Shown here piece by piece: positions 1-64,000 of a DNA stretch of 64,000 bases; the stretch's first letter is position 1; the number at the start of each line of letters is the position of its first letter. The DNA comes from Paragordius varius (lineage: Eukaryota > Animalia > Nematomorpha): positions 744,001 to 808,000 of the forward strand of contig OZ176060.1 in assembly GCA_964247055.1 (NCBI GenBank). Direction: 5' to 3'. The position numbers and the translations under genes are program-made. The notes under the pieces were generated by a model. The model had not been told where the DNA came from. It saw nothing but the letters and a program-made list of their open reading frames with translations, and searched no databases.

Positions 1-104
1 AAATATTATTATTTAAATATTTTTATAAAAAAAATTATATATTAGTAATTCAAATAAAAAAAAATATTTTTTAATAAAATTTTTTTTTTATTTTCTGTTT
101 TCAG

Positions 105-219
105 GTATGTTGCTTGTTCCAATTTCTATGCTTGGTTCATGTGTTGTCCACATGGAACACTTTTTGATGTTCGGTCAAACATTTGCGAAACAGCTGATAA
201 AATAACATGTGATTATTGA
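105..219 (+). CDS. Terminal exon of chitin-binding (CBM14/peritrophin-A) gene, copy A; rest of gene lies upstream of the window
   Basis: Acceptor ttttcag|G at 104/105. Translates (W)YVACSNFYAWFMCCPHGTLFDVRSNICETADKITCDY* with TGA at 217-219. Near-identical to terminal exons at 16888-17002 and 46500-46614, which complete a six-Cys ChtBD2 domain. Confidence 0.85.
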
Positions 220-365
220 CAACAGCTGTTATTGAATTGTTATTGAAATAAATTTATTAATAATTTATAATTTTATATAATTTATTTATTTGATTATTAA
301 ATTTATTAGTATTTTTAATTTATATTTTTAATGATTTTTCTAGAACTAAATTTTTTTTCAAAAAA

Positions 366-750
366 ATGCGAAACAGCTGATAAAATAACATGTTATTACT
401 GAACAGCTGTTATAATTAAAAATTTAATAAATTAATAAATTTTTAATAATTATTTATGTTATAAATATATAGACATATATATATATATATATAGTAATTT
501 TTAATTAATATTCTTTAAATATTGAACATATATTTTCGAAAATACTAAAATTGCGAAACAGCTGATAATGTGATTACTGAACAGCTGTTATTGAATTGAT
601 ATTGAAATAAATATTATAATTAATTGATTTATATAATCAATTATATATATAATTTATGTATTATTAATTTTTTTTACATATTTATTATTTTAGATATATT
701 TTTAATAAAAGTAGATAAAATTACATGTGATTCTTGAACAGCTGTTAATA
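366..750 (+). repeat. Degenerate reiterations of the 3' end of the chitin-binding terminal exon (copy A)
   Basis: tgcgaaacagctgataaaataacatg(tg)attactgaacagctgtt recurs at about 366, 552 and 720, separated by AT-only spacers. Confidence 0.85.
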
Positions 751-1084
751 ATTATTTACGTTATATAATTTATAAATATAATTAATATTGAATATATATA
801 ATTTGGTTTAAAATGGTTAAAAATACAAAAAATCCGACAAAAATTGCATAAAAATTGATTGAAACAGCTGATTTATTTGAGCTAAAATTGAAAAATACAA
901 AATATCCGTAAATTGAATAAAAATTGTTTGAATTTTGTAGAAAATTCTGAAAATTGACAAAAATTGTAAAAAAATTGAATAATTAAAATAATCTACCAAA
1001 AACAGCTGTTCATATCAAAAAGATTTGATTTATTATTAGATTTATTTCTTAAATTTTTTGTTAAAAAAATAGTTGAAATAAAAT

Positions 1085-4000
1085 TTTGCCCTCATAGATG
1101 AGATTGGTCTTGACTCAGCTGTTTCTGTTATTAGGAACCCAGCTGTATAAAATAGCTGACTAAAGTTTCTAAAGTAATTTTTCAAGATTAAAAGTTTGAA
1201 AAAATCTATATTTGTGACAAAAAAACGAAAAATAAACCGTCAAAAATTGATAAAAATTAAAAAAAAATGACAAAAATTGATAAAAATTGAAAAAAAACAG
1301 CTGATTTGGTATAAAATTGTTAAAAATACAAAAAATTCGACAAAAAATGAATTAAAATTGTTTAAAACAGCTGATTTTTTTATTAAATCTACCAAAAACA
1401 GCTGTTCATTCATAAAGATTTAATTAAAAAAAAATAGAATTATTTCAATTTAAATTTTTTGTTAAAAAATTGAAATAAAATTTTGCCCTTATCGATAAGA
1501 TTGGTCATGACTCAGCTGTTATTGTCATCAGAAACCCTGAAAATCAGCTGATCAAAATTTCTAAGAAGGTTATTTTACAAAGTTTTAAACTTTAATAATT
1601 CTTTGAAAAAAAGAAAAAAAATGAAAAAAATATAAAAAGTTGATTAAAACAGCTGATTTGGTTTAAAATGGTTAAAAATACAAAATTTGAATAAAAGTAG
1701 TTTAAAACAGGTGATTGGGCTAAAAATTCTAAAAAAATGACAAAGACTGACAAAATTCAAAAAAAAATTGAATCAAACAGCTGATTTTTATTAATTTAAA
1801 GAAATAAAAAATAAAAAGTGGTGATTGTCTAAAAAGTTTAAAATTAAATTTATTCTTTTTTCAATATATTTTAAATTTTTTCAAAAAATGAAATTATTTT
1901 CATTCATCGATGAAATTGGTCATGACTCAGCTGTTTCGGTTATCAGGAACCCTAAAAAACAGCTGATTAAAATTTCTAAAGTAATTTTAAAAGATTTTTT
2001 TAAGAAATTTTAATAAAAACTTTATTGAAACAGATGATTTGAAATAAAATTATAAAAAATACAAAATTACCGTGAAAAATTATTAAAAATTGTTTGAAAC
2101 AGTTTTTTTCGAAAGAAAAAAATCTATAAATACAGCTGATATTACTCAAAAAGTTTAGATTTAAAATTTATAGATTTTTTAGGTTTAAATTTTAACAAAA
2201 TATTAGTTAAATTAAGCTTTTGCCCTCATCGATGAGATTGGCCATGACTCAGCTGTTTCTGTCATCAGGAATCCAGCTGAAAAACAGCTGATCAAAATTT
2301 CTACGAAAGTAATTTAAAATTTTTTGAAAGAATTATAAAAAAAACGAAAAAAATTGATAAAATTTAAAAAAAACAGCTGATTTGAGGTTAAAATTGTTAA
2401 AAATGATAAAATTAAAACAAAAACTGATTTGATTAAATATTGATCGAAACAGCTGATTTTGTAAAAATCTACAAAAAAACAGCTGATAATACTGTAAAAA
2501 TTTAAAAATCAAATTTATCAGATTTTTAAATTTTTTAAAAAAATTGAAGTTCTGACGTGGCTTTCGCCCTCATAGATGAGATTGGCCATGACTCAGCTGG
2601 TCATCAAAAATCCAGCTGAAAAACAGCTGATCAAAATCTCTAAAGTAATTTTTAAAGATTAAAAGTTTGAAAAAATCTATATTTGTGACAAAAAAACGAA
2701 AAATAAACCGTCAAAAATTGATAAAGATTCTAAAAAAACAGCTGATCTGGGTTAAAATACAAGAAAACCGTGAAAAATTGAATAAAAACTGATTGAAACA
2801 GCTGATTTAATATATTTCAAAAAAAACTGTTTTCCGAAGAAAAACACAGAAAAACCGTAAAAAATTGAATAATAATTTTTTTTCAAAAAAAAGCTGTTTT
2901 TGTTAGAAAATAGAAAAAAACCGTGAAAAATTGAATAAAAATTGTTTGAAACAGCTGATTGGGCTTAAATATTAAAAAACCACACAAAAAACAGCTGTTC
3001 ATTCGAAAACGCTAAAAATTAAAATTATTAGATATATTTCGGTTAAAAATTTCACAAAAAAATAATTGAATTTAAATTCTCCCTCATCGATGAGATTGGA
3101 CATGACTCAGCTGTTTCTGTCATCAGGAACCCTGAAAAACAGCTGATTAAAGTTTCTAAAAAGGTAATTTTTGAAGATAAAAAGTGCGAAAAAAATTATT
3201 TTTTTAAAACTAATTGTAAAAAAACGAAAAAAAATGAATAAAACAGCTTTTTTTGAAAGATAAATACAAAATATATGTGAAAAATGGAATAAAAATTGTT
3301 TAAAACAGCTGTTTTTAATATATTTTTTTAAAAAAACTGTTCTCCGAAGAAAAATAGAGAAAAACCGTAAAAAATTGATTGAAAGCTAGAATCAAAAAAT
3401 CTACAAAATAATTGAGTATAAATTTCGCCCTTATCGATGAGATTGGACATGACTCAGCTGTTTCGATTATTAGAAACCCTGAAAAACAGCTGACTAAAGT
3501 TTCTAAGAAAGTAATTTAAAGTTTTTTTAAAAAAACTATATATATGACAAAAAACGTAAAAAATACCATTTTTATGAATTAATCTTTAAAAATAGCCATT
3601 TTTGGAAGAAAAATATAAAAAACCGTAAAAAATTAAATAAAATTAAATAAAACAGCTGATTTGGGCTAATAACGTTAAAAATTCGATAAAAACCAGCAAA
3701 ATTTAATAAAAATTGAATAAAACAGCTGATGTATAAATCTAAAAAACAGACAAAAAACAGCTGTTCACATCATTTAAATTTAAAATTATAAGATATATTT
3801 TGGTTTAAATTTTTAACAAAAATTAAATTATTCGCCCTCATCGATGAGATTGGACATGACTCAGCTGTCTCGGTTATCAGAAACCCTGAAAAACAGCTGA
3901 TTAATGTTTCTAAAAAGGTAATTTTTGAGGATAAAAAGTATGAAATAATTTATTTTTTTAAAAAAAATTGTAAAAAAAACAAAATAAATAAAACAGCTGT

Positions 4001-4110
4001 TTTCATTAAAACATGGAAAAAGCGTGAAAATATAAATAAAAAGATATACATTTGACTCAGCTGTTTCAGCGATTAGGAACCCTGAAAAATAACTGATTAA
4101 CTAAGAAAGT
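1085..4110 (+). repeat. Array of about 8 copies (plus a partial) of a ~95-bp coding-like exon unit ending in a splice donor, in CAGCTG-rich degenerate spacers
   Basis: Core tt(t/c)gccctcatcgatgagattggNcatgactcagctgtttctgtcatcaggaaccctgaaaaacagctgatcaaaatttctaa(aaag)|gtaatt at about 1085, 1481, 1897, 2219, 2563, 3077, 3424, 3832, with a partial at 4054. Translates FALIDEIGHDSAVSVIRNPEKQLIKISK(K). Confidence 0.85.
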
Positions 4111-4632
4111 GATAAGTTTTTTAACCCTTTTTTTGCAAAGAAAACAGTTGTTTTGGGAGGGAAAATATTTAAAAAAAACCATGGGAAATTAAATAAAAAA
4201 TGTCAGCTGTTTGATTTATCAGGAACCCTGATTTGTAAAGAAAAATGGAGTTCCTTGAAATTGACAAAACAGCTGTTTTTTTGAAAAATGCAATTGTATA
4301 ACAGCAGCTGATATATATTTTAGATATCAATATATATATTTATATATATATATTTTAGATATCAAAAATATTAAATATTTATTAAAAATATGTTTTTTAC
4401 TAAAATAAATAAAAAAATTTAATATTTATAAATAATTTTTTGGAAAAACCATTAAATAAATTTAAATTAATTATATATTTTCAAAATAAAATATTTATAA
4501 AATAAATAATTATAAATTAAATTATTTTCAAAAAATATAAATTTTGAAATATAAAAATAATAAATTATAAAATTTTTCAAATATACAATCAAAAAAATAA
4601 TTATATTACTATTTTCTTATAATTATATTTAG

Positions 4633-7600
4633 AAACCATTATCATCTGATGCCGAGACCAAATCAGGTGATCTGCCTCCTTTTTCGCACACATTCATCCC
4701 ATCAGCTGCAACTGACTTTAGAAAATTTCAAACAGCTGTTCCAACCAATAATTTTGGAAATAATAATAATTTTCAAATTCCTACTGATTATGATTTTGGT
4801 ATTTATTTTATAAAACAGCTGATATTCATTAAATTCTAAAATACAGCTGTTTATAAATTTATTAATATTTTGTCAACATTTATTTATTCTTATTTTAAAA
4901 AATTATTTAAGTTTTTTAAATAATTATAAAAGGATAATTTTCAAATTCCTACTGATTATGATTTTGGTATATATTTTTTAATAAAACAGATATTATATAA
5001 AAACAGCTGTTTATAAATATTAATTATTTATTTAAAAAATATATATTTAAATTTTTTATATTTTGTTATAATTTATTTATTTTTATAATGATATTATATC
5101 TTTAATATCTTTTTTACATATTTAATGTTTTATTTAAATTTTTTAAAAATAAAATATATTTGAATAACAGCTGTTTTTATTAAAAATTTAACACAAAATA
5201 ATAATTTTCGAATTCCTACTGATTATGATTTCGGTATTTAATTATTTATTTCATAAAACAGCTGATTTATATAAAAAAAATATTTATATGTCTAAAACAG
5301 CTGTTTCCAGATAGATATTTATATGTATAGATAAATTGATTTGTAAAAATTTATTTATTTATTTAATAAATTTTTTTTTAATTTTTTAATATAAATATAT
5401 ATAAAAGCTGTTTTTGCTTATAATTCACTAAAAATAATAATTTTCAAATTCTACTGATTTATTTTTAAAAATTTTTAAAGACAGCTGTTTATATATTTAT
5501 TAATTATAAGTTTTTTGTAATGTTTAAAACAGCTGTTTTTATATATTATATTTTATTTTTTTTAATATCTTAATTATTTTTATTTATAATTTAATTTAAA
5601 TGTTTTAAAAATAAAATATATTTTAAAAACAGCTGTTATTTTTTAAAATTTAATGAAAAATGTTAATTTTTGAATTCCTACTGATTATGATTTTGGTATT
5701 TATTTATTTTTTTCATAAAACAGCTGATATTATTTTAAAATGTTTATTAATCCTTAAAACAGCAGTTTTCAGATAATATATATATAAAAATTATTTTATT
5801 TACATTTAATAATAAATTAAATTTTTTTAAAAAAAAATATATTATTTTTAATAATTATATTGAATATTAATTTATTAAATAAAATAAATTTTTGAAAACA
5901 GCTGTTTACAAAATCTTAAAAAACAGATTTATCTGAATTATATTATTTAAATATTATTATAATATAAAAAAAATATTTTATAAAAAAATTATAAAAACAG
6001 CTGATTTATAAAATTATTAAATTGTTTTAATTTAATATAAAATAATTTTTTTAAAATAAAAATTATCTATTTATATTATATAAATAATTAATCTTATTAA
6101 AAAACAGCTTATTAATTAAATTGTTTTAATTAATAATAAAATAATTTATTTAAAATAAAAATTATCTATTTATATTATATAAATAATTAATCTTATTAAA
6201 AAACAGCTTATTAATTAAATTGTTTTAATTAATAATAAAATAATTTATTTAAAATAAAAATTATCTGTTTATAATATAAAAAAATAAATTGTTTTATAAA
6301 AAAACAGCTGATTTAATAAAATAAATTTTAAACTAAAAATATAAAATAATTATTTTTTTAAAAAATAATTTATATTAAAAAAACAGCTATTTATTAAAAA
6401 AAATTTTATTTTATAAAAATATAATTATAAAATATTAAATTTATTTTTTTGATAAATAAATAATTTTATTACAAAACAGCTGATTTATAAAAAATTTTTA
6501 AAAAAAACTGCTGATTTATTAATTAAATTTTTTTAATATAAAATTTTAAATTAATATCAAATTTTTTTAATTTAATTATAAAATAATTTTTTATAGATTA
6601 ATTAATTTTATATTAAAATTAAAAAACAGCTGATTTATTAAAAAAATTAATTTAATTTTTTAATTTAATAGAAGAAATTGGCCATAATAGGAATTTCGAA
6701 CAAACTTTTCAAAGGCCGAAACCTCTAACAGCTGGTTATTTTATTTTTTTTATTTTTATTTTTTTAATTTTATTTTTTTATTTAAAATTAATATTTAAAA
6801 AATATTAATTTAATATAATATATAAATTAAATAAAAGATTAATTTAATTAATTTTTTTTTATTTTATCAAAAATTGAAATAAATATTATATTTTTATTAA
6901 AAAATTAATATAATAAAACAATAAAAACTTAATGAAAAATATATTTATTTTTTTTATATTTTTTTAATTTTATTTTTTTTATATTTTTTTTATTTTACAT
7001 ATTTTTTAAAAAAAGAATTTAATAATATATTTTAATAAAAAATTTAATTTTTTTTCTAATATATTTTTAAATTTTTCTTTTCAAAATTTAATATTTTTTT
7101 ATTTTTTTTATTAATTTTTAAATATATTTTAATATTTTTTTTATTTTGTTATTTAAAAATTAATAATTAATAATTAAAAAATATAAATTTAATAATTTTA
7201 TTTTTTTTATTTTTTTATATTATTTTAATTTATTTTTTTGTTATTTATTTCTTTTATTTTATTTATTTTTTTTATAAATAATTAATAATTAATTTAAAAA
7301 ATATAAATTTAATATAACATATTTTTTTCATTTAATTTATATTATTCAAAAAATAATATTTATTATTTAAATTATTTTTATTTATATTTTTAATTTTTTT
7401 TAAGAATAAAAAATTAAATATTATTTTAAAAAACAATTTAATTTTAGATTATCCAAATTTTATTGATCATATTGGCGGTTCTCATTTTCAATCCACGAGG
7501 TTTTTAATTAAAAAAATTTTAAATTAATTAATTTTTAATAATTATATTATTTATTTTTAATTAATTAATAAATATATTAATTAATTTCTGTTTTTTTTAT

Positions 7601-10600: not shown

Positions 10601-13600
10601 AAAAATATTTTAAATTATTTTATTTAAAATATTTTATTAATATTTTATATAATATTTAAAAAAATAAAAAATTTAAATGAATACATATATATATTTGAAA
10701 TTAAAAAAAAGAAATTTATTTAAATTATTAAATATTTTATATAAAAATTATTTAAATTATTCTTATAAATTAAATTTTTAAATTATTATTAAAAAATATA
10801 TTTTATAAATATTTAAATAAAAATATTTAAAAATTATATAAATATAAAAAAAAGTTATAAAATATATATTAAAAATTAATTATATATATAAATATTAAAC
10901 ATTTAAAAATTAAAAAATCAATTATTTTAAGTTTATTAAATTAATAAAAAAAATTTATTAAAATAAAGAAGATATATTTAAAATAAAAATGTATATATTA
11001 TATTTATAAACTTTGATAAAAATAATAAAATATAAATTTTATTATAAATATATTTATATAAATAAAATAAAAAAAATTTAAAAAATAAATTAATTTTTTT
11101 AAAAAATATATTTAAATTTTTATAATAAATAAGAAAATTATAATTTGATTAAATTAGAATATTAATCAAATATTCAAAATAATTATTTTTAATTTTTATT
11201 AGGTTTTTTTTAAATAAATAATAAAATTATATATAAATTAATTTTTAAATATTTTTCCATAAAATAAAATTAAATAATAAAATTTTTAGTTTTAAAAAAT
11301 ATATTTTTCTTAATATTATTATTATCAATAAACTTAAATAAATATAAAATTAAAATTAAAATTTTTAAATATATTTTTTAATAAAAAATAAATTATTAAA
11401 AAAAAAAATAATTTTATGATTTATTTTTATTATCATTATTATATATAATTTTATTAATTAAATATTGTTTTTATTAAAAATAAATAAATAAATATAATTT
11501 ATTAAAAATTTAATATTTTTTAATTAAAGCGCCACCTTTTGTTCCACGAACGCCCAGGATTTCGCCTTTTACCATTAATTCTGGTAAATTTATTTTTATA
11601 AATTTATTTAAAAAAATATATATTTTATTAATTTTTAAAAAAATTATTTAAATTTATTTAAAATATACAACTTTTAAAAATTTTATTTTGATTTGAAATA
11701 ATTTTTCTAAAACATTATTTAAATTCTTTTTTAATTATAGATATTTTTATATTTTTGAATTTTTTAATATTTTAAATCTAAAAATATATTTTTAATTTTT
11801 ATTTTAAATATTTTCTTAAAATTTAAATATTTTATTTTCTATTCTTTTTTTGTATTTTTTGAAATTAATTAATTTTTTTTAATTGTTTTTTAATAATTTT
11901 TTTAACGTTTTAGAATTTTTTTTAATTTTTTTAAGATTTTTAATATTTTTATATTTAATAATTTTTTTAAATCCTTTTTTACCATTTTTTAAAATTTTTT
12001 TAATTTTTTAAAATTAATTTTATTTTAATAATTTAAATTTTTAATTTTTTATTTTTCATTTTTTTTATTTATTTTAAAAAATGATACATAAATATTAATT
12101 TTTTTGATTTTTTTATTTATTTTTTAATTTTCTTTTTATATTTAACATTTTTTAATTTTTTTTATAATTTTTTGATTTTCTATTCTTTTTTATTTTATTA
12201 AATGTATTTTAATATATATTTTTATAAAATATTTAAATTATAGTATATATTTTTTATTCTCATTTTTTTATTTTATATATTTAATAATTTTTTATAATTT
12301 TTTAATTTTTTTTATTCTTATTATTTTTAATTAAAATTTCTATACTTTTTTTTATATTTAATAATAATTTTAATTTTTTTATATTTTTAATATATTTTCA
12401 ATAATTTTTAGATTTTTCTTTTGATTTTTTTAAAAAATTTTATTTTTTTTATATTTTTTAACATTTTTTAAATAAATTTATATTTAAAATATTTTTTATG
12501 TAATTTTATTTTTTAAATATATTTAATACTAAATAATAAATTATATTTGAAAAAATGATATATATATATAATATGAATATATTTAATTTTTAAATATTTT
12601 TTAGTTTTTTAAAAAAATATTATTTTTTATATATTTTAATATATAAATTTAAAATTTTTATTTTTTTAAATTTATTTTAATAATTTTTTTTTAATTTTTT
12701 ATTTTATATTTTTTTAGTTCCTCCAATAATAAGAACTCCATCAGCTGTTCAGCCAGCTGGTTTACCTCGAGGTAAAAAATATTTTTTTATAAAAATTTCA
12801 AAAATTATTATATTTTAAATATTTTTAAAAAATTTTGATTATTTTGATTTTATAAAATTAATTTTTAAGTAAAAAAACATAAAAAAATTTTAAAAAATTA
12901 ATTTTTTTTTAATTATTTTTATTATTTTTTGTTTTTTATAAAATATTTAAAAAAAATTAATAATATTAAAATATTTTTAATTTATTTTATTAATTTTATA
13001 AAATTAATTTTATTTTTAAATAAAAAATATAATATTAATTTTTTATAAAAAAAATTAATAAATTTTTTTTATAATTTTTATATTTTATATTTAATTTATA
13101 AAATATAAAAAGAAAATTAATAAATTTATTCAAATATTTTTAATTTATTTTATAAAAAAATTTTTTAAAAAAATTAATTTTTTTATTTTTTTTATTTAAT
13201 ATAAAATTATAAATTTTTAAAAAATAATTTAATTTTTATAATTTATTTATTTTTATTTTTTTATTTTAATAATAATTAAAAATATTCGTTTATTTTAAAT
13301 TTTTTTGTTTGTATTTTTCCATTTATTTTCATTTATTTACATTTTAAATATTATTTATTTTAATTTTTTTAAAAAAAATTTAAGTTTTTATTTATTTATT
13401 TTCATTCTGAAAAATAAAGAAATAAAAAAAATTTAATTTTTTTTAAAAATAAAAAATAATTTATTTTATAAATATTTTAAATTTTAAATTTTTTTTAGAA
13501 AATAATTTTTTTAAATTATATATATAAAAATTAATTTATTATAATAAATTTATTTTATTTATTAATAATTTTTCGTTTTTTATTATTTAATAAAATTAAA

Positions 13601-16600
13601 TTTAATTTTTTTAGTACTTTTTTGTTAATAAAAATAAATAATAATTTTTTAAAATTAAAAAAAAATTATTTTAATTTTATTATTTTTTTAATACTTTTAT
13701 TATTTAGAAATTATTTTTTTATTTTTTTAATTTTATTTATTCTTTATTTATTTTTTAATTTTTTAGTTTATATAATTATTTTAATAAATCAATTTATTTT
13801 TTTAGTATTAATTTATAAAAAAATATATAAAAAATTATATTTTTAAAAAATAATTTTAATAATTTTTTTTTCACAAAAAATTAATTATTTTTGTTTTAAT
13901 ATCTTTAATAAAGTTAATTATTTTATTTTATTTTTTTTAAACATTATTTTATTTTTAATTTTTTATTTAAAAATTAATTAATTAAATTTTTTAATACAAT
14001 ATAAATAATTTTATTTATTTAAATTTTTTAGTTTTTGTTCAATTTATTTTGATTAAAATATATATATTTTTTAAATTAAAATATTTTATTAAATTTTTTA
14101 TTTTATTTTTTTTATTAATTTTTTATTTTTTAATAATATATAAATAATTTTATTTATAAAAATATAAAAATTAAATATTTTTTTTAAATTTTTTAGTTTT
14201 TGTTCAATTTTTTTTAATTAAAATATATATATTTTTTAAACATTAAAAATATAAAATTAAATTTTTTTAAAAAATTATCATTTTTATTTTTTAATAATAT
14301 ATAAATTTTTTTAAATTATATATATAAAAATTAATTATGTATAAAATAAATTTTTTTAAAAAATTTTCTTATTTTATTTTTTTTAATAAAATAATAATAT
14401 TTATTAAAAATATAAAATAATTATTTTTATTTTTTTTTATTTAAAAATAATTAAAATAATTAAATTATTTTTTTAAAAATTATTTATTTTTTAAAAAATT
14501 AATTTTATTTTATATTTTATGAAATTAATTATTTAATTTATTATAATTTTTATTTATATTTAATAGATAATTTTAAAAAGAATAAAAATAATTATTTATT
14601 TTAAAAAAATAAAAAATTTAATTTTTTTAATTTAGTTTTTATATTTTTTAATAAAAAAAAATTACTTTAATTTTTTTTAGTTTTTGTCCCAATGAGCATA
14701 ATGGCAATGAATATGGATGAATGGCAATGCGAATTTGATGTAAAATTATTTTTATTTAAAATCAGCTGTTTTTTTTAAAAAAAATTTATTTTTTAAATAT
14801 TTATTAAAAATTAAATATTTAAAATTAAGTATATATTAAAACAAAAAAATTAAATTTATTAATATAAAATATATATAATTTTATAAATTTTGAAAATTAA
14901 AATATTTAAGTTTTTAAAAAAATATTTAAATATTTAATAATATTAATTTTAATTAAAAATTTTATTTATAATATTTTAATTCATTAATTTAATAAAATAT
15001 AATATATTTAAAATTTTAAGTTTTTATTAAAAAAACAGCTGTTTATTAAATATTTTTAATTAAATTATATTAAAAATTTAAAATCTTTAATATTTTAATA
15101 AAATATACTATTTTCATATTTTTCAAAAACAGCTGTTTTTTAATGAAAAATATAATTATTAATATAATTTTTTATATAAATTATAAAATTTTAGTTTTTT
15201 TTATAAAAATTATAAATATTTTTATAAAAAAATTATTTTCCAAACAGCTGTTTTTTAATTAAAGAAATAATATTTTTTCCACTAGAGTATGAAAATAAAT
15301 GCAAACAGGAAAGAAATAAATTTTGAATGCAAATCAGCTGATGGAATATATCCTGTGCCTGGAAAGAATTGTGTTTGGTAAATTAAATTTATTTTTAAAA
15401 AAAAATTTTTTTTTTATAAAAAAATTTAAAAATAATTTTATAAAATTTATTTTTTATAAAAAAAATAATTTAAAAATTATTTAAAATTATTTATAAAAAA
15501 ATATTTTAATTAATTAAAAAAATATAAATTTTAAAATATATTTATATTTTATAAAAATTATTTATAAAAAAATATTTTGATAAATTAAAAAAATATAAAT
15601 TTTAAAATATATTTATATTTTATAAATTTTAAAAAAATTTAATTTAAATGATATTTTTAATTTATTTTTTAATAAAAAATTAAAATATTTTTTAAAAAAA
15701 TATATCTTAAAAACTAATAAAATAATTTAATTAAATTATAATTTTTAATTAAAATTTTTTAAAAAAAAAAATTTTCCAATAATAATTTTTTTTTTGAAAA
15801 AATTAAAATTAATTATAAATTAAATTATTTTTTAAAAATTTTATTGATTACATTTATATTTTTTATTTTTTATAAATTTTAAATAAATTTTTTTTTATAA
15901 ATTTTAATATTTTATTATATAATTTTTTACATAAATTTATTTATTTTTGAAAATAATTAATTAAATTTATATATATATAAAATTATATAAATAAAATATT
16001 TAAAAAAATGGTTTTAATAATACAAATAATTAATTAAATTTTTTTATAAATTTTTTTAAATTAAATTAATTTATTTAAAAAAAAATAATTTTAAATATTT
16101 TTAAATTATTTTTAAATTAATAAAAAATAAAAAAAATTAATAAAAAATTAATTATTTTAAAATTTTTCCTATAAAAAATATTTAAATTTTTTACAAATAT
16201 AAATATTTTTATTTTAAAATTAATAATTAATATAAAAAATTATATTTTATTTTTAAAAAATTTAATATTTTTTATATAAATTTATTATTTTTATATTTTT
16301 TTTTTTAAATTAAATTTATTTATTTATAAAAATAATTAATTAAATTTATATATATATATATATATAAAATTTTAAAAAATTAAATTTTAATTAAAAAAAA
16401 TTATATTAAAAATAATTATTTTTGGAAAAATAATTTAAAAATAAAAAATAATTAATAAAATTTATTTTAAAAATAAATAATTTTGGAAAATTAATTCAAA
16501 AATAAATATTGTTTTGTAAATAAATATTTTTATAATTATAAAAATTATTTTTTTATTTTTAAAATAAAAGAATTTTTTAAATAATTTTTATTAAATTTAA

Positions 16601-17002
16601 TTCTTTTTTAAAAAAAATATTTTATACAAAAAATAATATTTAAATAAAATTTAAATTATTTTTTTAAATATATAAACATCTTAATAAAAATTTTTTAACT
16701 AAATTTAAATTAATTTATTGAAAAATTTTTTTTATAAAAATTATATATTTTATTAAATAATATAGTTATTTATTAATTTTTTTTTTAAAAAATAATTAAT
16801 TAAATTTATATATATATAAAATTTTATAAAATTTAAAAAAATATTTTTTTTTAAATAAAAAAAATTTTTTTAATTTATTTTTTTCAGGTATGTTGCCTGT
16901 TCCAATTTCTATGCTTGGTTCATGTGTTGTCCACATGGAACACTTTTTGATGTTCGGTCAAACATTTGTGAAACAGTTGATAAAATAACATGTGATTACT
17001 GA
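4633..17002 (+). CDS. Multi-exon Pro/Ser/Thr-rich protein with C-terminal chitin-binding type 2 (CBM14/peritrophin-A) domain, copy B; 5' end not found
   Basis: Exons 4633-4798, 6672-6734, 7448-7499, 8220-8297, 9131-9189, 9507-9539, 10510-10581, 11530-11583, 12718-12771, 14681-14739, 15286-15377, 16888-17002. All GT-AG and phase-compatible; 897 nt = 298 aa plus stop. C-terminus CKSADGIYPVPGKNCVWYVACSNFYAWFMCCPHGTLFDVRSNICETVDKITC has Cys spacing C-x13-C-x5-C-x9-C-x12-C-x7-C, typical of ChtBD2. Confidence 0.85.
4935..5720 (+). repeat. Intronic reiterations of the 3' end and donor of the first identified chitin-gene exon (copy B)
   Basis: aattttcaaattcctactgattatgattttg|gtat recurs at about 4935, 5203, 5437 (degenerate) and 5665. 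The same is seen in copy C at about 31385 and 31655. Confidence 0.85.
6021..6270. repeat. ~99-bp tandem repeat, about 2.4 copies, intronic
   Basis: aattatctatttatattatataaataattaatcttattaaaaaacagcttattaattaaattgttttaatt begins at 6061 and 6160, with a partial copy at 6259. Confidence 0.8.
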
Positions 17003-17159
17003 AAACAGCTGTTATTGCATTGATATAAATATTTTGAATAAATTTAATAAATAATTTTTTATTTTATATATATATATATATAAAAGTAATTTTTAAATTT
17101 TTTATAAAATACTTATATTTTAGGATATTTTTTAAGATTAAAAAAATTTTAAAAAAAAT

Positions 17160-18385
17160 TGCAAACAGCTGATAAAACAACATGTGATTACTGACAACAG
17201 CTGTTATAATTGAAATTTGATAAATAATTTTAATAAATTCTATAAATATATAATTTATTTTATATATATATAATAATTTTAGAATATTTATATTTTAGAT
17301 TATTTTTTAAGATTAAAATTTTTTTAAAAATATTTGAGAGCAGCTGTTATAATTGAAATTGAAATAAAATTAATTAATAAATTATAATTTTATATAATTT
17401 ATTTATTTGATTATTAAATTTATTAGTATTTTTAATTTATTCAATATATAAATTTTATGTTAATTTCTAAAAAAATTGCAAACAGCTGATAAAATAACAT
17501 GTGATTACTGAAAACAGCTGTTATAATTGAAATTGAAATTTTGAATAAATTTAATATTTTTTATATTTTATATATATATATATCAATATTGTATTTTATA
17601 TTTTTTAATTTTTCTAATATAAAGTTTTAAAAAATTATTAAGAAACAGCTGATAAAATAAGATGTGATTATTGAACGGCTGTTATAATTGAAGGATATTC
17701 AAATAAATTCATTAATAATTATTTATGTTATATAATTTATAAATATATATATAATATTTAATTTTTTAATAAATATTTTTCTTAAAAAAATTTAAAAATA
17801 AATTAAGAAATAGTTGATCAAATAACATGTGATTACTGAAAACAGCTGTTATTGAATTGAAATTTAATAAATAATTTTAATAAATTTTTAATTTATTATA
17901 TATATATATAAATATGAATTTATTATAATATTAATTTTTAATATTTTATTTTATTAATAAAAATTTTTCTTAAAATTAAAAAAAAATTTTAAAATGCGAA
18001 TCAGCTAATAAAATATAACATGTGATTATTGAACAGCTGTTATGATTGAATTAAAATAAATTAATAAATTTTTAATATTTATAATTTATTTAAATATAAA
18101 TATATTTAATATGGAATATAAATATTAGTGATTTTTCTAAATCTATATTTTTAATGATTTTTTAGGACTAAAATTTTTTTCAAAAAAAATTGCGAAACAG
18201 CTGATAAAATAACTTGTAATTACTGACAACAGCTGTTATAATGTAAATAAATAATTGAAATAAATTTATTTATTTGATTCTTAAATTTATTATTTTTTAA
18301 AATATAAAGTATTAATTATTAAATGTTTAAATTTTTTGAAACAGTTGATAAAATAACATGTGATTACTGAAAACAGCTGTCATAT
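17160..18385 (+). repeat. About 8 reiterations of the chitin-gene terminal exon end including the stop codon (copy B)
   Basis: (tgc)gaaacagctgataaaataacatgtgattactga(a)aacagctgttat at about 17160, 17340 (partial), 17477, 17641, 17806, 17995, 18192 and 18338. Confidence 0.85.
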
Positions 18386-19647
18386 TTAAAATTAACTTTT
18401 TGACTAAATTTTAGGTAAATTAATAATTAATATTTTTTTAATATATTAATATATTTGATAAACCTTTAAAATTGAAAAAATAAATAAAAAATTAACAAGC
18501 ATCAGCTGATAATATAAAAATTATTAAAAAATTTAAAAAAGATATTTTTACTTGAAATAAAATTTGGATATATTAAATGAATTAAATAATTATATAAAAA
18601 TATGAATTCTAAAATAATTCATATAAAAAGTGTAATTGTTTATTAAAAATATAAAATATATTATAAACTAATTGTATAAATAAAAAATATTTATAATAAA
18701 ATTTGAATTTGAAATTTATTTACAAATAAATTATTATAAAGTAAAATAAAATTTTTTAAATATTTTTCAAATAAAAATTAAATTAATTGAACAATTAATT
18801 TTAAGAAAATTTAAAAATAATTTTATAAAATATATTATTATTATATATATTTATTGTTAAAATATATAATATATATATAAAATATATATATTATTTTCAA
18901 GTAAATTATAAATATATATATAATGAATTAAAATTAAAAATTTTAAAAAAATTTCATAAAGAATTTTTCTAAAATTTAAAAAAATAAATATTTTTTTTTT
19001 AAAATTTAATTATTTTTAATAAAATAAAATTCAATTTTAATTATTTGTAATAAAATGATATTTCTTTTTTATATTTGTTTTAAATATAATAAAATTATAT
19101 ACGAATAATTTATTAAATAATATTCTTAATAAAATTAATTATAAATCAAATTAAAACTATATATTTAAAAAAATAAAATAAATAATAAACAAAATTGATT
19201 AAAAATTATTATTTAATTAAAATAAATAAAATTAAAACGTAAAATGCGTTTTATAAAGTAAAATTAAAAATTATATTAAATAATATGATAAAAAATATAT
19301 AAATTATATTAAATATGTAATTATTTTAAAAATATTAATTTTTATTATAAAATTATAAATTTTATTTAAAAAAAATATATATATAAATATATTATTATTT
19401 TAAAATAATTTTTTTAATTTAATAGAGTATATATATATATATATATAATGTTTATATTTTGTAAAATATTTTTAAATATAAATATATTAAATAATATAAA
19501 AATTAATTTAACAACATTTAAATTATAATTATTTAAATATAATAAATATTAAATTTATTAATTATTTTATATACTAATATTTTTTAAAAAAAAGTTATAC
19601 ATAAGATTCTTAAAAAAATATAATTTGATTAAAATTAAATTGACTTA

Positions 19648-19678
<31 letters not shown>

Positions 19679-46000: not shown

Positions 46001-46614
46001 AAAATTTTATATTTTTTATATAAATTAATTATTTAAATAATTTTTTTTGATAAATTCAATTAATTTAATTAAAAACTATTATTAAATATTTAAAATAAAA
46101 ACTTAAATTTAAATAAAATAATTATTTTATGTTTAAAATATTATTTAAAAATATTTTAAAAAAAAATTATTTTAAAAAAATATTATTTAAAAATAATTTT
46201 TTTTATTTTTTTATTTTTTAAAATTATTTATTTTTTTAATTTATTTATAAATATTTTTTTATTTTTAAATTAATTAATTTATTTTTAAAATATATTTTAA
46301 AAAAAAATATTTATTAAAAAATATTTTTATTTATTTTTATTTATAAAAAATTATTTATTTATAAATATATTAAATTTAAATATTTATTAAAAAATTTTTT
46401 TTAAAAAAAATATTTTTTTTATAAATAATTTTTATAAAAAAAATTTAAAATAATTATTTAATTTATTTTTTTTTAATTTATATTTTATTTTCTTGTAAGG
46501 TATGTTGCCTGTTCCAATTTCTATGCTTGGTTCATGTGTTGTCCACATGGAACACTTTTTGATGTTCGGTCAAACATTTGCGAAACAGCTGATAAAATAA
46601 CATGTGATTATTGA
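30813..46614 (+). CDS. Pro/Ser/Thr-rich chitin-binding (CBM14) protein, copy C; lacks one exon, has two exons duplicated; no start of its own found
   Basis: Exons 30813-30978, 32712-32763, 33838-33918, 35352-35410, 36068-36100, 36847-36918, 37643-37696, 38586-38639, 41194-41247, 41806-41859, 43435-43493, 44396-44487, 46500-46614. 945 nt, open, 314 aa plus stop, same six-Cys domain. No frameshifts or stops relative to copy B. Confidence 0.85.
34202..34246. repeat. (TA)n microsatellite
   Basis: About 22 TA units. Similar tracts at about 19645-19672, 37006-37044, 48360-48393 and 56923-56960. Confidence 0.9.
44035..44114 (+). repeat. Truncated duplicate of the acceptor and 5' part of the penultimate chitin exon (copy C)
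   Basis: cagctgttttttaattttccactag|agtatgaaaataaatgcaaacaggaaagaaataaattttgaatgcaaatcagctg, then AT filler. The full exon follows at 44396. Confidence 0.85.
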
Positions 46615-46749
46615 TTGGAAAAAAACGTTTTTATTGAAATAAATATTTTTAATAAATTTTTAATAAATATATAAATAATAAATTTGAAAATTTTCTATAT
46701 TCATATTTTTATTGATTATTCTAGAAATATAAATATTTATTAAAAAAAT

Positions 46750-46897
46750 TGCGAAACGGCTGATAAAATAACATGTAATTATTGAAAACAGCTGTTATAA
46801 TTGAAATAAAAATTTTGAATGAATAATAAATTCTTAATAAATTAAATAAAATTTTAAAAATATATAGATATATATTTAATATATTATTTTATTAATA

Positions 46898-46947
<50 letters not shown>

Positions 46948-48355
46948 TTAATATTTTTAATTTATTATATATATATAAATATATATTTTATATATATATT
47001 TGTATTTTATTAATAAATATTTTTCTTAAAATTAAAAAAATTTAAAAATAAATTAAGAAACAGTTGATTAAATGTAGTTATTGATTGAAAAATAGCTGTT
47101 ATAATTGAAATAAATATTTTGAATAAATTTATTAATATATATATATGAATTAAAATAATATATATATATATATAATTAATATAATTTATACATATATATA
47201 TATATAATTAATATAATTTATACATATATATATATATATATATATATATTAGTAAATTTAAGATATTTTTAGTTTTTATTAAAAAAATTAAAAAAAAATT
47301 TGCGAAAGAGCTGATAAAATAACATGTGATTATTGAAAACAGCTGTGATAATTGAAATAAATATTTTGAATAAATTTTGAATATATTTTGAAAAATTTTA
47401 TATTTATATATATGAATTTATTATAATATTAATTTTTTATTTTATATTTTTTGATTTTTCTAATATAAAGATTTAAAATAATTTGTGAAACTGCTGATAA
47501 AATAACATGTGATTACTGAACAGCTGTTATGATTGAAAATTTGAAATTAATTTATTAATATTTTTATAAATTTTTATAATATATTTATATATAATTTTAA
47601 AATAATTTTAAAATAATTAATATTAAATATTTATATATATATATGTATATTAGTGATTTTTCTATATTTATATTTGTAATGATTTGAAAAGTAAATTTTA
47701 AAAATATGAAACAGCTGATAAAATAACATGTGTTTATTAAACAGCTGTTATAATTGAAATTGAAATAAATTTATTAATAATATATATAATTAATTATGTA
47801 TGAATTAATTCATATAATAATATATTTATAATTTTTAAAAATTTTCCTGCAATAAATATTTTGGAAAACAAAAAAATAATTAAAAAACAGCTGATAAAAT
47901 AAAATGTGATTATTACACAGCTGTTATAACTGAAATTGAAATACATTTATTAATTATATAATTTTTATAATAATAAATATATTTTTAATCTTTTATTTTA
48001 TTAATAAATATTTTTATTAAAATTAAAAATTTTTTATTTAATTTGCGAAACTGATTAAACAACATGCGATTATTGAACAGCTGATATTATTGAAATAAAT
48101 ATTTTTCATAAATTAATTAATAATTATTTATGTTATATAATTTATAAATATATTTAATATTGAATATATATATATATATATATATGTTATTCTATTTGAA
48201 AAATAATAATAAATATTATATATATATTTGATAAAATTAAAAAAATTGTAAAAAAAATTTGCGTGATAAAATAACATGTGATTACTGAACAGCTGATTGA
48301 AAATTTGAAAAAAATTTATTAATAATTTTTAATAAATTTTTAAAATATATAATTT

Positions 48356-48397
<42 letters not shown>

Positions 48398-48424
48398 AAT
48401 ATTTTATTTTATTAATAAAATACT

Positions 48425-48455
<31 letters not shown>

Positions 48456-49020
48456 TTATTAATATTTTATTATTTTAATTTTTATGATTTTTCCTAAAAC
48501 TAAAAATATTAAAGAAAATTAAAGTAACAGCTGATAAAATATGTTATTGATTGGAAAACAGATGTTTTTTTTGAATTATATAAATTTATTAATAAAATTT
48601 TTTTTAAATTTTTAATAATATAATTTATATAATTAATTTTCAAAAATTATTATCAAAAAAATTTAAAAAAGTTTTGCGAAACAGCTGATAAGATTTGATT
48701 ACTGATTGGAAAAATTGATGTTTTTAAAAAATTCGAATAAATATATTCAAACTTTTTTAATAATTTTATAATAATTTTATAATTATAGATAAATTTATTA
48801 ATATTATTATATTTAATAAAAATACCTTGAATATTAAATATAAATTTTAGAAAAAATTTAAACATTATTAATTAAACAGCTGAAAAAATAACGTATTGTT
48901 AATGAACGGAAAACAGATGTTTTTATTGATGAATATATATATTATTACCAAAAAAAATATTAAAAAACAGATGATAAAATAACATATGATTTTTGATTAA
49001 AACAGCTGTTTTTTAATTAT
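46750..49020 (+). repeat. More than 10 reiterations of the chitin-gene terminal exon end (copy C), decaying distally
   Basis: gcgaaacagctgataaaataacatgtgattattga...cagctgtt variants at about 46750, 47056, 47301, 47484, 47706, 47885, 48044, 48260, 48526, 48674 and 48965. Confidence 0.85.
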
Positions 49021-50395
49021 ATAAATATTTTTACATATAATAAAATTAATTATTTATATATAAATAAATGTATTTTTGATTTGAACTTTATAGTTTATTT
49101 ATTTTTAAATAAAAAAATGCTAAACAGCTGATTTGTTATATTTATATAAACAGATATAGATAGTAAAAAAACAGCTGATTTTTTAAAAAAAATATATTAT
49201 TTAATTGTATATTTTTTTAATAAAAAAATAATTTTTAAAGACTAAAAAAATAAAAACAGCTGTTATATGAAAAAAATAAATATAATGAAATTAAATTATA
49301 TTATATTTTTTATAATTAATTAATTAAAAAAAATAATTAAACAGCTAATTAATATAATAAAAAAATTTATATAAAAATAATATTATTGAAATATAATTTA
49401 TGTATTTAAAACAGCTGATTTGAACATAAAATGGTTTTGTAAATAAATATATTATAAATTATAAAAACATATAATTGATATTATTTTAATTATTTCAAAT
49501 TATAAAAAAAATTGGATATTTCTTTAAATAAAAAAAATTTTTATTATAAAACAAAAATTTATATATATAAAAAAAATAAAAAATATTAATAAAATTTTTA
49601 TATATTTAAAACCGCCAATTAAATTTTGCTTTCTTAATAATATTTAAATTAAAAGCTATATAAAAAATTCAAAGTTTTAATATTTAAGAAAAATTATAAT
49701 TATAAATTATTTTATTAATTCTCAAAAATTATTTAAATATTTTTCATAATTAAAAAATATATATTAAATTTTTATATAAAAACCATATTTATAAATAAAT
49801 AATTTAAATAAAATAATTAAATTATTTTGAAAAATAATTAATATTAATAAAAAAATAACAGAAAAATATTAAAATATTAATTTTTTATTGAGATTTATTA
49901 TTGTTAAATTAAAAAATTTATACAAAAATAAAAATTTATTATTAAAATAATAATTTTAATAACATTAGTATATATTAATATTTATATATAAAATATATAA
50001 ATATTTGAAATATAATAATTAATTTTATTAAATTATATATAATATTTAGAAAAATATACATAAGATAAAATTATAAAAAAATAAAAAAAATAATGAAAAA
50101 AATTTCTAATATAAAAAATTAATTTTTATAAAAAATATTAATTTAATAAAATATTAATATATATTATTTTAACATAAATGGAAATAATATAAATATAGAT
50201 TTTTTATAAAAATAAATAAATAAATAAAATTTTTATTAATAAATTATATTTTTATTTATTTAAAAAAATAAAATTTTAAGTAAAATTAAATTTATATTTT
50301 CATTAAATTTTTTTATTTTTCTAAAAACAATTAAATTTTATTGATATTAATAAAAATAAATAAATATATATATATATATATAATATATATATATT

Positions 50396-50908: not shown

Positions 50909-51350
50909 TAATTTTTTAATAAAAATATTAAAAATAAAAAATAAATTTATAAATTTATTTTATTCCTGGAAAAGTATATTTATATATAAATGTATATATA
51001 TTTTATTATTTTAATAAAGTTTAAAATTATAATTTTACCATTTTTATGTTTTTTTAAATTTTATGAAATTTAATAAATTTTTTTAAAATTATATATTTTT
51101 AACAATATTTTATTAATTTTCAATATTTAGCTTATTTAAATTAAACCAATTATTTTTAAAAAATATATTTATTATATATTTTTAAAATTATTTGTTAATT
51201 TTATAAAATTTCAAAAAATCAAAACATTTTTTAAATATATATTTTATAGTTTAAAAATTATTTTTTTTTATTTTTATTTTTCGTTATACATAGAATTTAT
51301 AATAATAAATATTTTTGTATTATTTAAAAATTAGATAGTTGATTAAAATA

Positions 51351-54984: not shown

Positions 54985-55007
54985 ACTTATAAATCAAAGC
55001 AAGCATT

Positions 55008-59900: not shown

Positions 59901-62900
59901 ATCAGGTGATGGGAAATTGACAGCTGTTCAAAGGAAAGTACACTATTTAGCAAAAGTATATAATTTAAAATATATTTTAAATTAAATAAATTTTTTATAA
60001 TTAAAACAAAAATTGTTTCTTATAAAAATAAAATTTTTATGTTAAAAAATATATTCTTATTTTATTCCTGTTTTAAATATTTTTTTATTCAAATAATATA
60101 TTTAATTAAAATAAATTAATTATAATTACTTATTTTTTTTATTAATTGTAATTTTTCATCAATAAAAAATCAATAAATTATTTTTAGATATATAAAAAAG
60201 CGATTTTTTGAAATTAATAAATATTTTTTTTAAATTATTAAAGCGATTTTTTGAAATCAATAATATTTTTGAGAAAATACATTTTTTAATCAGCTGTTAT
60301 AAAAAATTTATTTTAAATAAAATAAATTTAAATTATAAAAAAATATTTTAATTTATCCTTTTTTGACATAATATTTTTTAGCATTGCAATTAAATTATAA
60401 AAAAAAACTTGATATTTAAATAATTAAATAATAATAATAAATTAATATATTTGAAAGAAAATATTTTTTTGTTATCATAATTTTTTTTTACAAAATTTAT
60501 ATATATATTATTTAAAATTTAAAAATAATTTATATTTATTTAAATCAGCTGTTTTCATTATTTTTACAATTTTTTTAGTATTTATGCGAATTGTGTTTAC
60601 TGGAAGGCGAAACTTTTTTGTTCTTTGAACCGAGCAGACAAGTATCAGCTGTTTTATGTCTGGCGAACCTAACACTCAAACGCGAACCATATGTTTGATT
60701 TAATTTATTTTAAAAAAATTCTAAAATATTTTTTAAATATATATATATATATATTATAAATTATTTATTTTTAAAAAAATTATATATTCTTAAAATTTTC
60801 CTTTTGAAATTAATAAATATAGGTTAGGTTTTCTAGAAAAATTACATTTGAAAAAAATTAATTAACAAAAAGTTAATTAATTTCAAAAAAAATTTTTTAC
60901 AACAAAAATATTTTTTTATATATATTAAACTTATATTATTATAGTATTATAAAAAATAAAAAAAATTATTTTTTTAAATATAAAGCTGTTTTATCTCTGG
61001 CAAACCTAACCCTAAAGAGAGAACCATATGTTTGATTTAATTTTAAATATTTTAATGTTTTTGAATCATATATATAATTAAAATTTATTTTCATTATTAT
61101 AAATTATATATATATATATATATATATTTAGTTATTTAATTCTTAAAAAGGTTATATATTTTTAAAAAATTTCCATTTTAAAATTTTTTATATCTTAAAA
61201 ATATATAATTATTTTTATTTAATATATATAAAACATAATGTTAATTAAAAATAATAATTTTTTTATATATATTTTAAAATTATTATATTTTTATATTTAT
61301 AAGTTTTTATATTTTATAAATAAATAAAATTATTTTTAAAAATAAAGCTGGTTTATATCTGATTAACCCTAAATCTTAAGAGGGAACCATATATTTGATT
61401 TAATATTAATTTAATTTTACGAATAATTGTTAGAAATAATATTAATTTTTTAATTTTTTAATAACCCTTTAAAAAAAATAATATAAATAAATCAAAATTA
61501 TAAATAAATAAAAATTATAAATATTTTAAAATTATATATATATATATTTTATTTAATAAAATTTAAAAATAAATATTGAAAAATATCAAAAATATTTTAT
61601 ATTACATTAAAATTATTATATTACATATATAAAAATTATTTTTTAAAAATATTTAATTAATTTAAATTATTTTTTAGGAACCAATCCTAGAAAAAATAAC
61701 GGGATTTTCCTATAAAGATTTTCTCAGCTGTTTGCAAGCTTTATACGCCACGCAATGTAAATATTATCAGCTGTGCTGTAATCATATGGTAATTATTTTT
61801 TAATTTTAAAATACTTAATTTTTTTATTTAATTAAAATATCTATTTGATAAAATAATTAGTTTATTCATTAAAAATATTAAAATTTTTTAAATTTATTAA
61901 AAAAAAATATCAGCTTAGTCATATGGCTGATATTTAAATTTTTCCTATAATTTTTATTTTAAATAATAATAAATTATTTTATATTTTTAATTTTTTAACA
62001 AAAATTCTATCAGCTGTCCTGCCATATGGTTATTAGCATTATTTATTTTATTAAAAAGTATTTATTTATTTAAATAAATTTATAATTTTTTTTTAAAATA
62101 AAATAATATATCAATAATATAAATTATCAGCTGTAATAAATATTTTTTTATTTATAACATCAATTTTATTAAAATTCCTTTTTAAATAAGATAATTTAAT
62201 ATAATATTTTAATTTTTATATAATATTTAAATAAATAAATTATATTAATTTAATTTTTTATATTATTTATGTTTTAGGAATCCAAATCAACTGATAGTGG
62301 AAAACAACAGCTGTTTAAAGCCGTTTGGGAAAAATATTCTGCAATTGGGTTTTTATTAAATTAAATAATTTATTTTCTAACTATTTTTAAAATTAAAAAA
62401 TATTTTTATATATTAGGTTTATAATTAAATTTTTAGAAAAAATATTTTTCCATATTTTATTGATAATTTTGTAAAATATCAGCTGCTTTGATCAAATGAA
62501 AATAGTTTATTTTTCAAAAATCAGCTGTTTTAATATAAAAATTTAATTAAAATTAAAAATAAAAAATTATTTTATAAATAATATTACCAAATATATAGAG
62601 AGAAAAATTTAAATATTATTAAATATTTCAATTGTTTGTTTAATGATTTTTTATTAAAAAATAATATTTTATGTTTTGGTAATTATTCTTTTATATTTTT
62701 TTACTTAAAATTATATAGAATATAAAATAAAATTTAATTTTATTTCAAAACAGCTGTATAAAAAAAATTTATTTAAATAATAATACATTAACTAATTCTT
62801 ATATTAATATTAAAAAATATTTATTTAATTTATTTTATTTTTAATAGTTTTTTATTAAACAGCTGTAATTATAATTTTATTCTAAATTAATTTAGTATTT

Positions 62901-63340
62901 ATTTTTTTTTATAATTTTTTAATATTTATGAAAAATTTAAATAAATAAATTAAAAAAAAAATAGGGATATTAATATAAAAATAATATTTTTTAAATAATG
63001 TAATTTATATATTTCAAAATAAAAAATTTTAAAATTATTTTTTTATATTTTTATTTAAAACAGCTGTTTAAAATAAATTTATTTTATGGGTATTTAGTAT
63101 TTTTTTATATTTTAAAATGGTATATTAATATAAATACTTATTTTTTAATATTTTTTATTCAAAACAGCTTTTTTAATTCAAAACAACTATTTTAATAAAT
63201 ATATTTAATTATATATTATATTTAATAATTTTTTATTCAAACAGCTGTTTTTTAAAAAAATATTTTTTTTATTCTTTAGATTCGATGAAGTCTCAAAGAT
63301 GGAACCACCGCCCCCTTATAAAATTCTCATTAATAAATAA
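55008..63340 (+). CDS. CycA: Cyclin A, complete 10-exon copy (700 aa) with repeat-expanded N-terminus
   Basis: Exons 55008-56160, 56716-56840, 57711-57862, 58586-58657, 59313-59506, 59906-59955, 60579-60692, 61678-61788, 62278-62348, 63280-63340. 2103 nt, open, TAA at 63338-63340. N-terminal cyclin box as in copy 1, plus C-terminal fold [31 protein letters not shown]...[19 protein letters not shown]...[21 protein letters not shown], matching cyclin A C-termini. Confidence 0.9.
57065..62035 (+). repeat. Intronic reiterations of cyclin A exon ends (copy 2)
   Basis: Exon 2 end plus donor at about 57065. Exon 3 end at about 58165. Exon 5 acceptor plus start at about 58970, 59018 and 59188. Exon 5 end at about 59636 and 59813. 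Exon 7 end at about 60983 and 61346. Exon 8 end at about 61908 and 62008. Confidence 0.85.
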
Positions 63341-63887
63341 AATATTTTATAAACAGCTGTTTAAAATAAATATTTTTATATCAGCTGTTTGAAATAAATT
63401 TTTTTTATATTAATTTGATTTATTTATATATTTTTATTTTATTTTTTAATTATATATTTAGTTTTAATTCGAGATAAATATTTAAAAGTTTAATAAATCA
63501 GCTGTTTGAAATAAATATTTTTGTAAATATTTTAAATTTATATGTTTGCTTGATATATTACTTTTAAAATATTAAATATAATAAATATATAAATTATTTA
63601 TATAATTTTTGTAATTAGTTATTTTTTATTTTTTTTTATTATATAAATTTATTTATAATTTTTTATATTTTCATTTTATCAATTGAAAAAATTTATAATC
63701 AGCTTAAAATTATTTTTTTATATTATTATTAAATAATTATTATAAAATCTAATTTTTTACAAATTCTTAAAAATATATAATATTTTATAAATCAGCTGTT
63801 TGAAATATTATATTACACCAGCTTATTTTTAAAATCAGCTGTTAAATAATTTTTATAATCAGCTGTTATGAGTGGATTTTTTATTCG

Positions 63888-63920
63888 TACGTTTGCTTAA
63901 AGGTCACTACCCTCTTTTTA
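63888..63920 (-). other. Isolated GC island, possibly a terminal exon of a convergent minus-strand gene
   Basis: Minus strand aaaaag|AGG GTA GTG ACC TTT AAG CAA ACG TAC GAA TAA (RVVTFKQTYE*). Supported only by GC contrast with the surroundings. Confidence 0.2.
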
Positions 63921-64000
63921 AAAATTTTAAATAAATTTAAAAAAAAACTTTTTATATATCAGCTGTTAATTAAAATATTTTTTATGTTTTATTTTTATCT

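Follow-up and report, generated by a model that had tools for sequence, protein, structure and literature searches.

What maintains some two hundred copies of one GC-core palindrome, CAGCTG, in a 64-kb stretch of DNA (the window) of the horsehair worm Paragordius varius that is only 12% guanine-cytosine (GC)? An initial annotation of this window had taken the word, commonly extended to A-W-CAGCTG-W-T (W being A or T), for the dominant GC-containing word of non-coding DNA, with about 200 copies by eye and less than one expected by chance, and had supposed that something genome-wide holds it against AT pressure. Our analysis bears out the abundance and provides evidence for the maintenance of individual copies; it also moves the word from non-coding DNA at large to gene segments, where it appears as a two-fold symmetric site for which a homodimeric protein of the AP-4 type may, tentatively, be proposed as the reader.

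A hyper-abundant palindrome confined to gene segments

CAGCTG occurs 202 times in the window, where base composition predicts 0.16 copies and a first-order Markov model 0.26, an excess of about 800-fold over composition; the maximal-order Markov expectation is uninformative because the 5-mers of the word derive almost solely from the word itself. It tops all hexamers with at least four G/C, the runner-up being CGTCTG with 136 copies that come from the ATCGTCTGC arrays considered below. The 10-mer A-W-CAGCTG-W-T accounts for 146 of the 202 copies and the full form AAAWCAGCTGWTTT for 35, and the most frequent 10-mers are AACAGCTGAT (63), AACAGCTGTT (52) and ATCAGCTGTT (25), the excess of the first over the last stemming from exon-related classes and repeat families. 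The other E-box hexamers are at or near expectation (CACGTG, 4 copies; CATATG, 7, with 5.5-8.6 expected; CAATTG, 6, with about 9 expected), the exception being CAGGTG and CACCTG, which together number 26 against about 0.3 expected, an enrichment of about 80-fold.

The window is made up of a tandem segmental duplication with a unit of about 31 kb (units at ~4.3-30.5 kb and ~30.5-60.2 kb, with a third starting beyond), and exons were called from paralogue conservation, reading frames and splice signals. When positions are classed by the GC content of their 51 bp surroundings with the motif masked, GC islands (at least 20% GC; 8.3 kb) hold 83 sites, or 10 per kb, 132 times what their own composition predicts, and intermediate DNA (10-20% GC; 8.2 kb) holds 65, or 8 per kb. 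The desert (<10% GC; 40 kb) has 52 sites, or 1.3 per kb (expectation 0.001), so that the enrichment relative to local composition is far higher there than the 132-fold of the islands, while the ATCGTCTGC arrays (23% GC; 7.4 kb) have two, or 0.27 per kb. Hence, the description of CAGCTG as a word of non-coding DNA holds for the roughly 50 desert copies and fails for the 148 of 202 (73%) within GC-bearing exons and exon copies, DNA that makes up 26% of the window; only 30 copies have flanks (±30 bp) at or below 6.7% GC, and several copies formerly taken to stand alone in introns belong to small exons that are conserved in both units (8264, 9185, 10507/10525, 12742/12754). The other distributional claims of the initial annotation agree with our counts: its five clusters contain 67, 13, 14, 18 and 21 sites (Table 1), each array has a single copy, and long stretches of 5% GC have about one per kb. 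CAGCTG is, as these counts show, restricted to gene segments, namely exons, the first tens of bases past some donors and exon-copy arrays, and is rare in deep intron.

Individual copies outlast their surroundings

The two units were aligned with every CAGCTG replaced by N, from motif-free anchors and with uniform scores, because rewarding G/C matches would align the motifs to each other by construction. Within well-aligned desert, CAGCTG sites are shared in 7 of 16 cases (a partner site within 6 columns), a small sample, compared with 15-20% for single G/C bases, about 1% for random desert positions and a calculated value of about 0.05% for six independent desert bases all being shared; A/T bases are shared at 74-76%. 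The corresponding fractions are 26/35 in the intermediate class and 41/46 in the GC islands, where coding constraint explains much of the retention. By about 15 bp from the conserved paralogous sites, identity has fallen to background, which argues that the footprint is the word with its A/T frame and not a conversion tract. The supposed maintenance against AT pressure is thus seen site by site, with the sites outlasting the G/C of their flanks, and this constitutes direct evidence, from small numbers, that the isolated copies are no remnants but are actively retained.

A symmetric frame and position-specific decay

The flanks of the desert copies are two-fold mirror-symmetric at distances 1-7 on each side: A is found at 93%, 84% and 73% at positions -2, -3 and -4, T matches it at the mirror positions, and the frames AA..AT and AT..TT are seen 12 and 10 times, respectively. 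One-off variants preferentially alter the two central bases and keep CA..TG, with 29 central versus 16 outer clusters once repeats are collapsed (p=2e-5 against a null with one third central). Second among the cores is CAGGTG/CACCTG, and the rarest variants are TAGCTG/CAGCTA (5) and CAACTG/CAGTTG (9). Flank symmetry and tolerance within CANNTG together show the recognition logic of the word, and both fit the E-box/AP-4 identity that the initial annotation had given it.

Each of the 20 copies of a CBM14 exon-end unit has two motif positions of equal age that are 32 bp apart and both set in the full AW..WT frame; the exonic one is intact in 9/20 copies and the one 16 nt past the donor CAT/GTGATT (the slash marking the exon boundary) in 18/20. 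A second repeat family keeps a motif 14-40 nt past its donor in 7/7 copies. Such unequal decay at equal age speaks against a mutational shield, or a bias of repair, that acts indiscriminately, and the position-specific retention fits selection on particular sites. More generally, close pairs of CAGCTG are most often spaced 30-32 nt apart. The intron stutter arrays to which such units belong (17000-18520, 46600-49000, 4776-5730 and 30956-31700) reiterate the final ~40-50 nt of an exon, the adjoining donor and the CAGCTG beyond it; donor and post-donor motif stay intact in them as the exonic part decays. The CBM14 exon donor itself sits in AACATGTGAT; this further E-box (CATGTG), likewise framed by A-W...W-T, is present 16 times in the window (197-215, 16980-16998, 17489-17507 and others).

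The word in coding sequence

CAGCTG dictates codon choice in the first exons of the two cyclin A paralogues. It is read there in the frame NCA-GCT-GNN, and the alanine codon is GCT in 21/21 of the NCA-GCN-GNN contexts, compared with 12/31 elsewhere. Four-fold sites are identical in 18/18 cases in the motif versus 60/67 outside it, a test without power as the paralogues are 90% identical there. This 90% identity at the four-fold synonymous sites of the two exons, set beside the 15-20% of G/C shared in the surrounding desert, reflects either strong synonymous constraint or sequence exchange between the exons.

Organization of the window

Table 1. Sites and clusters of CAGCTG in the window, with the features in which they lie.
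Feature	Positions	Strand	Observation
Densest cluster	1..6750		67 sites, 9.9 per kb
Two sites within a small exon (..PSAVQPAGLPRG)	12742..12759	+	conserved exon
Intronic copy 25 nt past the donor of a small exon	14763..14768		kept at 43515 in the paralogous unit
Isolated desert copy AAAACAGCTGTTTA	15032..15045		paralogous site at 43791 despite diverged flanks
CBM14 exon-end stutter array	17000..18520	+	13 sites
Lone copy in the first ATCGTCTGC array	21496..21501		matching position 53512 in the second array
Cyclin A paralogue 1, first-exon open reading frame, 386 aa	24640..25800	+	11 in-frame sites, read T/S-A-D/V
Exon 30813-30977 and reiterations of its 3' end plus donor	30481..32360	+	14 sites
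Paralogous CBM14 exon and stutter array, second unit	46401..49420	+	18 sites
Cyclin A paralogue 2, first-exon open reading frame, 395 aa	55008..56195	+	12 in-frame sites, most shared with paralogue 1
Cyclin A paralogue 2, 3' part and downstream DNA	60201..64000		21 sites, many with <7% GC flanks

Each unit has three features on the + strand: a gene split into numerous small exons, with pieces that are collagen-like and chitin-binding (CBM14-like); a ATCGTCTGC array of 4 kb that runs in one direction; and one cyclin A paralogue. All recognisable genes of the window are on that strand, and the small exons are bordered by clear splice signals (..TTTAG/ and /GTAAA or /GTGAT). The second unit has an internal duplication of ~2-3 kb (36981-39059 vs 40526-42241, 73-79% identity) that results in two copies of two small exons. 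At the second site of the exon at 12742-12759, the first unit has CAGCTG, whereas the two copies in the other unit read CACCTG (P-A-G vs P-P-G). The densest cluster spans a CBM14-type exon copy, an 8-copy 'orphan exon' array and decayed exon-end repeats. The orphan exon is represented by eight well-kept copies of ~100 nt between 1085 and 4110, spaced ~350-400 bp apart and with the same open frame in all, each reading ..ALIDEIGHDSAVSVIRNPEKQLIKVSKKV followed by the donor GGTAAT and containing two CAGCTG. The unit of the 17000-18520 array comprises the exon tail (..C-E-T-A-D..), its donor and the second CAGCTG beyond it, and in 30481-32360 isolated AAAAACAGCTGWTTT copies fade into the desert at a spacing of ~210-220 bp.

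The two ~4 kb arrays (20400-24630 and 51300-55000) contain 103 ATCGTCTGC words, every one of them on the + strand, and reach up to both cyclin A start codons. Upstream of each array, a block of ~70 bp (19771-19841 and 50833-50903) is near-identical between the units amid diverged desert; it contains ..CATGCG..GCCG..TTTCGAATCGAAAAAGCGCAAAA and, by its sequence, resembles an E2F/cell-cycle promoter element that may serve cyclin A. Rfam and tRNA scans of the 64-kb window gave no match. A search for relatives with the cyclin A first exon returned none, and a cyclin A exon retrieved a single one, a Logan contig (SRR31795740; 3272 bp, 1-3272; 31% GC) that encodes a compact cyclin A with introns of ~60-110 bp and 74% identity to the cyclin-box exon of the window; its 2 CAGCTG, 0 of them in the AW..WT frame, have no bearing on other hairworms.

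A putative AP-4-type reader

What reads this word? Going by sequence, we tentatively favor, though we stop short of calling it probable, the view that its copies are selected sites for a homodimeric AP-4-type basic helix-loop-helix (bHLH) protein that mark exon-bearing transcribed DNA. AAAWCAGCTGWTTT would then be a selected two-fold symmetric site, most likely read on double-stranded DNA, and its putative reader a homodimeric class-A E-box protein of the AP-4 (bHLH-leucine-zipper) type, with the species' putative AP-4/HLH-11 orthologue as the candidate binder of AAAACAGCTGTTTT. The likeness to the AP-4 site (TFAP4, Drosophila cropped, C. elegans HLH-11) lies in the CAGCTG core, in the symmetric A-W...W-T frame, which is the preferred AP-4 flank in motifs from systematic evolution of ligands by exponential enrichment (SELEX), and in the secondary core CACCTG, which is the hairworm runner-up. 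AP4 is reported to be an obligate homodimer on CAGCTG and, less often, on CACCTG (PMC3698521). The bound sites would mark or anchor transcribed exon DNA in a landscape of otherwise ~4% GC. They might, for example, shape chromatin or retard the polymerase over exons, for which CTCF-dependent polymerase pausing at exons offers an analogy.

The deployment of the sites differs from that of their known counterparts. The AP-4 and Ohler motif 5 sites number one or a few per promoter, whereas the hairworm word reaches up to 10 per kb, lies in exons, exon copies and 3' regions, and constrains codons. The Drosophila core-promoter E-box1/Ohler motif 5, with which the initial annotation had equated it, occurs in broadly expressed fly genes (PMC8842121), and the known CAGCTG promoter element peaks just upstream of start sites (PMC1779564, PMC8842121). 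By position this equation does not appear to hold: the copies are in exons and downstream DNA, and there are none in the promoter-like block at 19771-19841 or anywhere in the interval 18521-20399 around it, the start position being itself inferred. This missing upstream peak is the first of several points that weigh against an AP-4-type reader. To our knowledge, no described transcription factor uses sites at anything near the density of up to one per ~35 bp seen in coding DNA. The desert retention test rests on small numbers; in the GC islands the motif is retained at 91% versus 71% for other 4-GC hexamers, a marginal difference (p=0.045), and such hexamers hardly exist in the desert. Finally, a self-complementary word is also predicted by a model of RNA duplexes.

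Alternative explanations

It might be argued that the word merely hitch-hikes, with a few ancestral exon sites multiplied by the ~31 kb duplication and the exon-end repeats and the word itself without a role, given that the window consists of two to three tandem copies of one segment and that many sites lie within tandem families. However, when sites were clustered at 80% identity over 50 flanking bases, a level that none of ~20,000 random pairs of AT-rich positions reached, they fell into 158 clusters, 128 of them singletons, so that 128/202 sites have flanks unlike those of any other site and the excess is not a by-product of local duplication. Together with the retention of desert sites past their flanks and the ~130-fold enrichment of the word in exons over their own composition, this rules out hitch-hiking as a complete explanation and leaves it highly improbable as the principal one. 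The same 128 unique flanks, and the loss of paralogous similarity within ~15 bp, led us to reject a core of a mobile element, miniature inverted-repeat transposable element or satellite. A polyadenylation site, which would call for AATAAA 10-30 nt upstream and on the sense strand alone, was likewise rejected: AATAAA lies upstream of 17/45 desert sites and its mirror TTTATT downstream of 16/45, compared with 23% and 34%, respectively, in random desert. A molecular drive resembling that of bacterial iterated palindromes, in which a modification enzyme or a bias of repair or gene conversion turns near-matches into CAGCTG or restores it without site-by-site function, has several points in its favor: sites of slight benefit in the hundreds of thousands would be hard for ordinary selection to hold, the word takes up every NCA-GCN-GNN context in the cyclin A first exons (21/21), and the transition products expected from C deamination are precisely the rarest variants. 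Yet such a blanket process should not discriminate in the way observed, both between the paired motifs of the CBM14 unit, with their 9/20 and 18/20 retention, and between gene segments and the 23% GC arrays or deep intron, from which the word is nearly absent; we know of no candidate methyltransferase or comparable process in this animal and consider drive distinctly unlikely.

An element acting at the level of RNA appears unlikely too, if a little less so. Here, AACAGCUGUU in the pre-mRNA would be an enhancer of splicing or exon definition, or its copies would pair and so fold the long AU-rich introns. The + strand orientation of all recognisable genes and the limitation of the word to apparently transcribed DNA are in keeping with this, as are the copy 13-27 nt past the donor in three independent exons of ~11, the amplification of two donor-plus-motif units as stutter arrays with their post-donor copies kept (18/20 and 7/7), and the 30-32 nt spacing of close pairs. 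Nevertheless, most exons have no post-donor copy, 4/11 small exons have no copy at all, and the positional profile around donors and acceptors has no clear general peak besides the word's own AAAACAG half. Moreover, a single-strand RNA-binding protein does not need symmetric flanks, G-U-compatible variants are not clearly favored on the sense strand (9 vs 5), the favored CAGGTG/CACCTG would mismatch CAGCUG in a duplex, and the sequences of the repeat families, as read, offer no extended complementarity beyond the word. A broader proposal, which we regard as possible but doubtful, is that a 10-14 bp palindrome says 'this is gene' throughout the genome to a dimeric factor, which defines exon chromatin or licenses the animal's own genes against repeats; the word would on this proposal saturate exons and their edges, override codon and even amino-acid choice and be conserved site by site in DNA otherwise decayed to ~4% GC.

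Relationship to known iterated words

The hairworm word also resembles HIP1 (GCGATCGC), the highly iterated palindrome of cyanobacteria, which is 15-300-fold over-represented, occurs in coding and non-coding DNA and is conserved above its surroundings, with a function long unexplained (PMC5861425, PMC4390886); this resemblance is also what lends the drive model its precedent. The hairworm word is similarly a hyper-abundant palindrome of coding and non-coding DNA and is, as found here, conserved past its flanks. In contrast, HIP1 is bacterial and tied to two orphan DNA methyltransferases and to transformation/recombination, whereas the hairworm word keeps to gene segments. Other words with a genome-wide skew are the bacterial uptake sequences (DUS/USS) and Chi, which likewise enter reading frames as far as the code permits; however, they are oriented and non-palindromic, and their excess arises from DNA uptake or RecBCD, neither of which applies to an animal nucleus. 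Within animals, the periodic A/T clusters (PATCs) of C. elegans, in a sister phylum, act as a germline 'licence' for genes and lie in gene bodies, not promoters. They offer a lead, and only that, as a sequence feature by which an animal's own genes stand apart from repeats; PATCs, being phased runs of A/T within introns, differ from a GC-core palindrome, and we know of no link between them and an E-box. Our search of the literature found no description of CAGCTG in Nematomorpha or of such a word in an animal. What is new here is the masked paralogue test of isolated copies, the 14 bp symmetric frame, the spectrum of E-box variants and the position-specific decay in repeat families.

Significance

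If the word were indeed a gene code, it would be the first eukaryotic counterpart of the bacterial highly iterated palindromes and could explain how exons are found within introns of 95% AT. If, more specifically, an E-box-type word marks gene segments genome-wide in the hairworm, it would be a case of a transcription-factor site shaping protein sequence at a large scale. It would also provide a handle on the recognition of short exons inside kilobases of near-pure A/T, and would make the purpose of the cyanobacterial highly iterated palindromes testable in a eukaryote.

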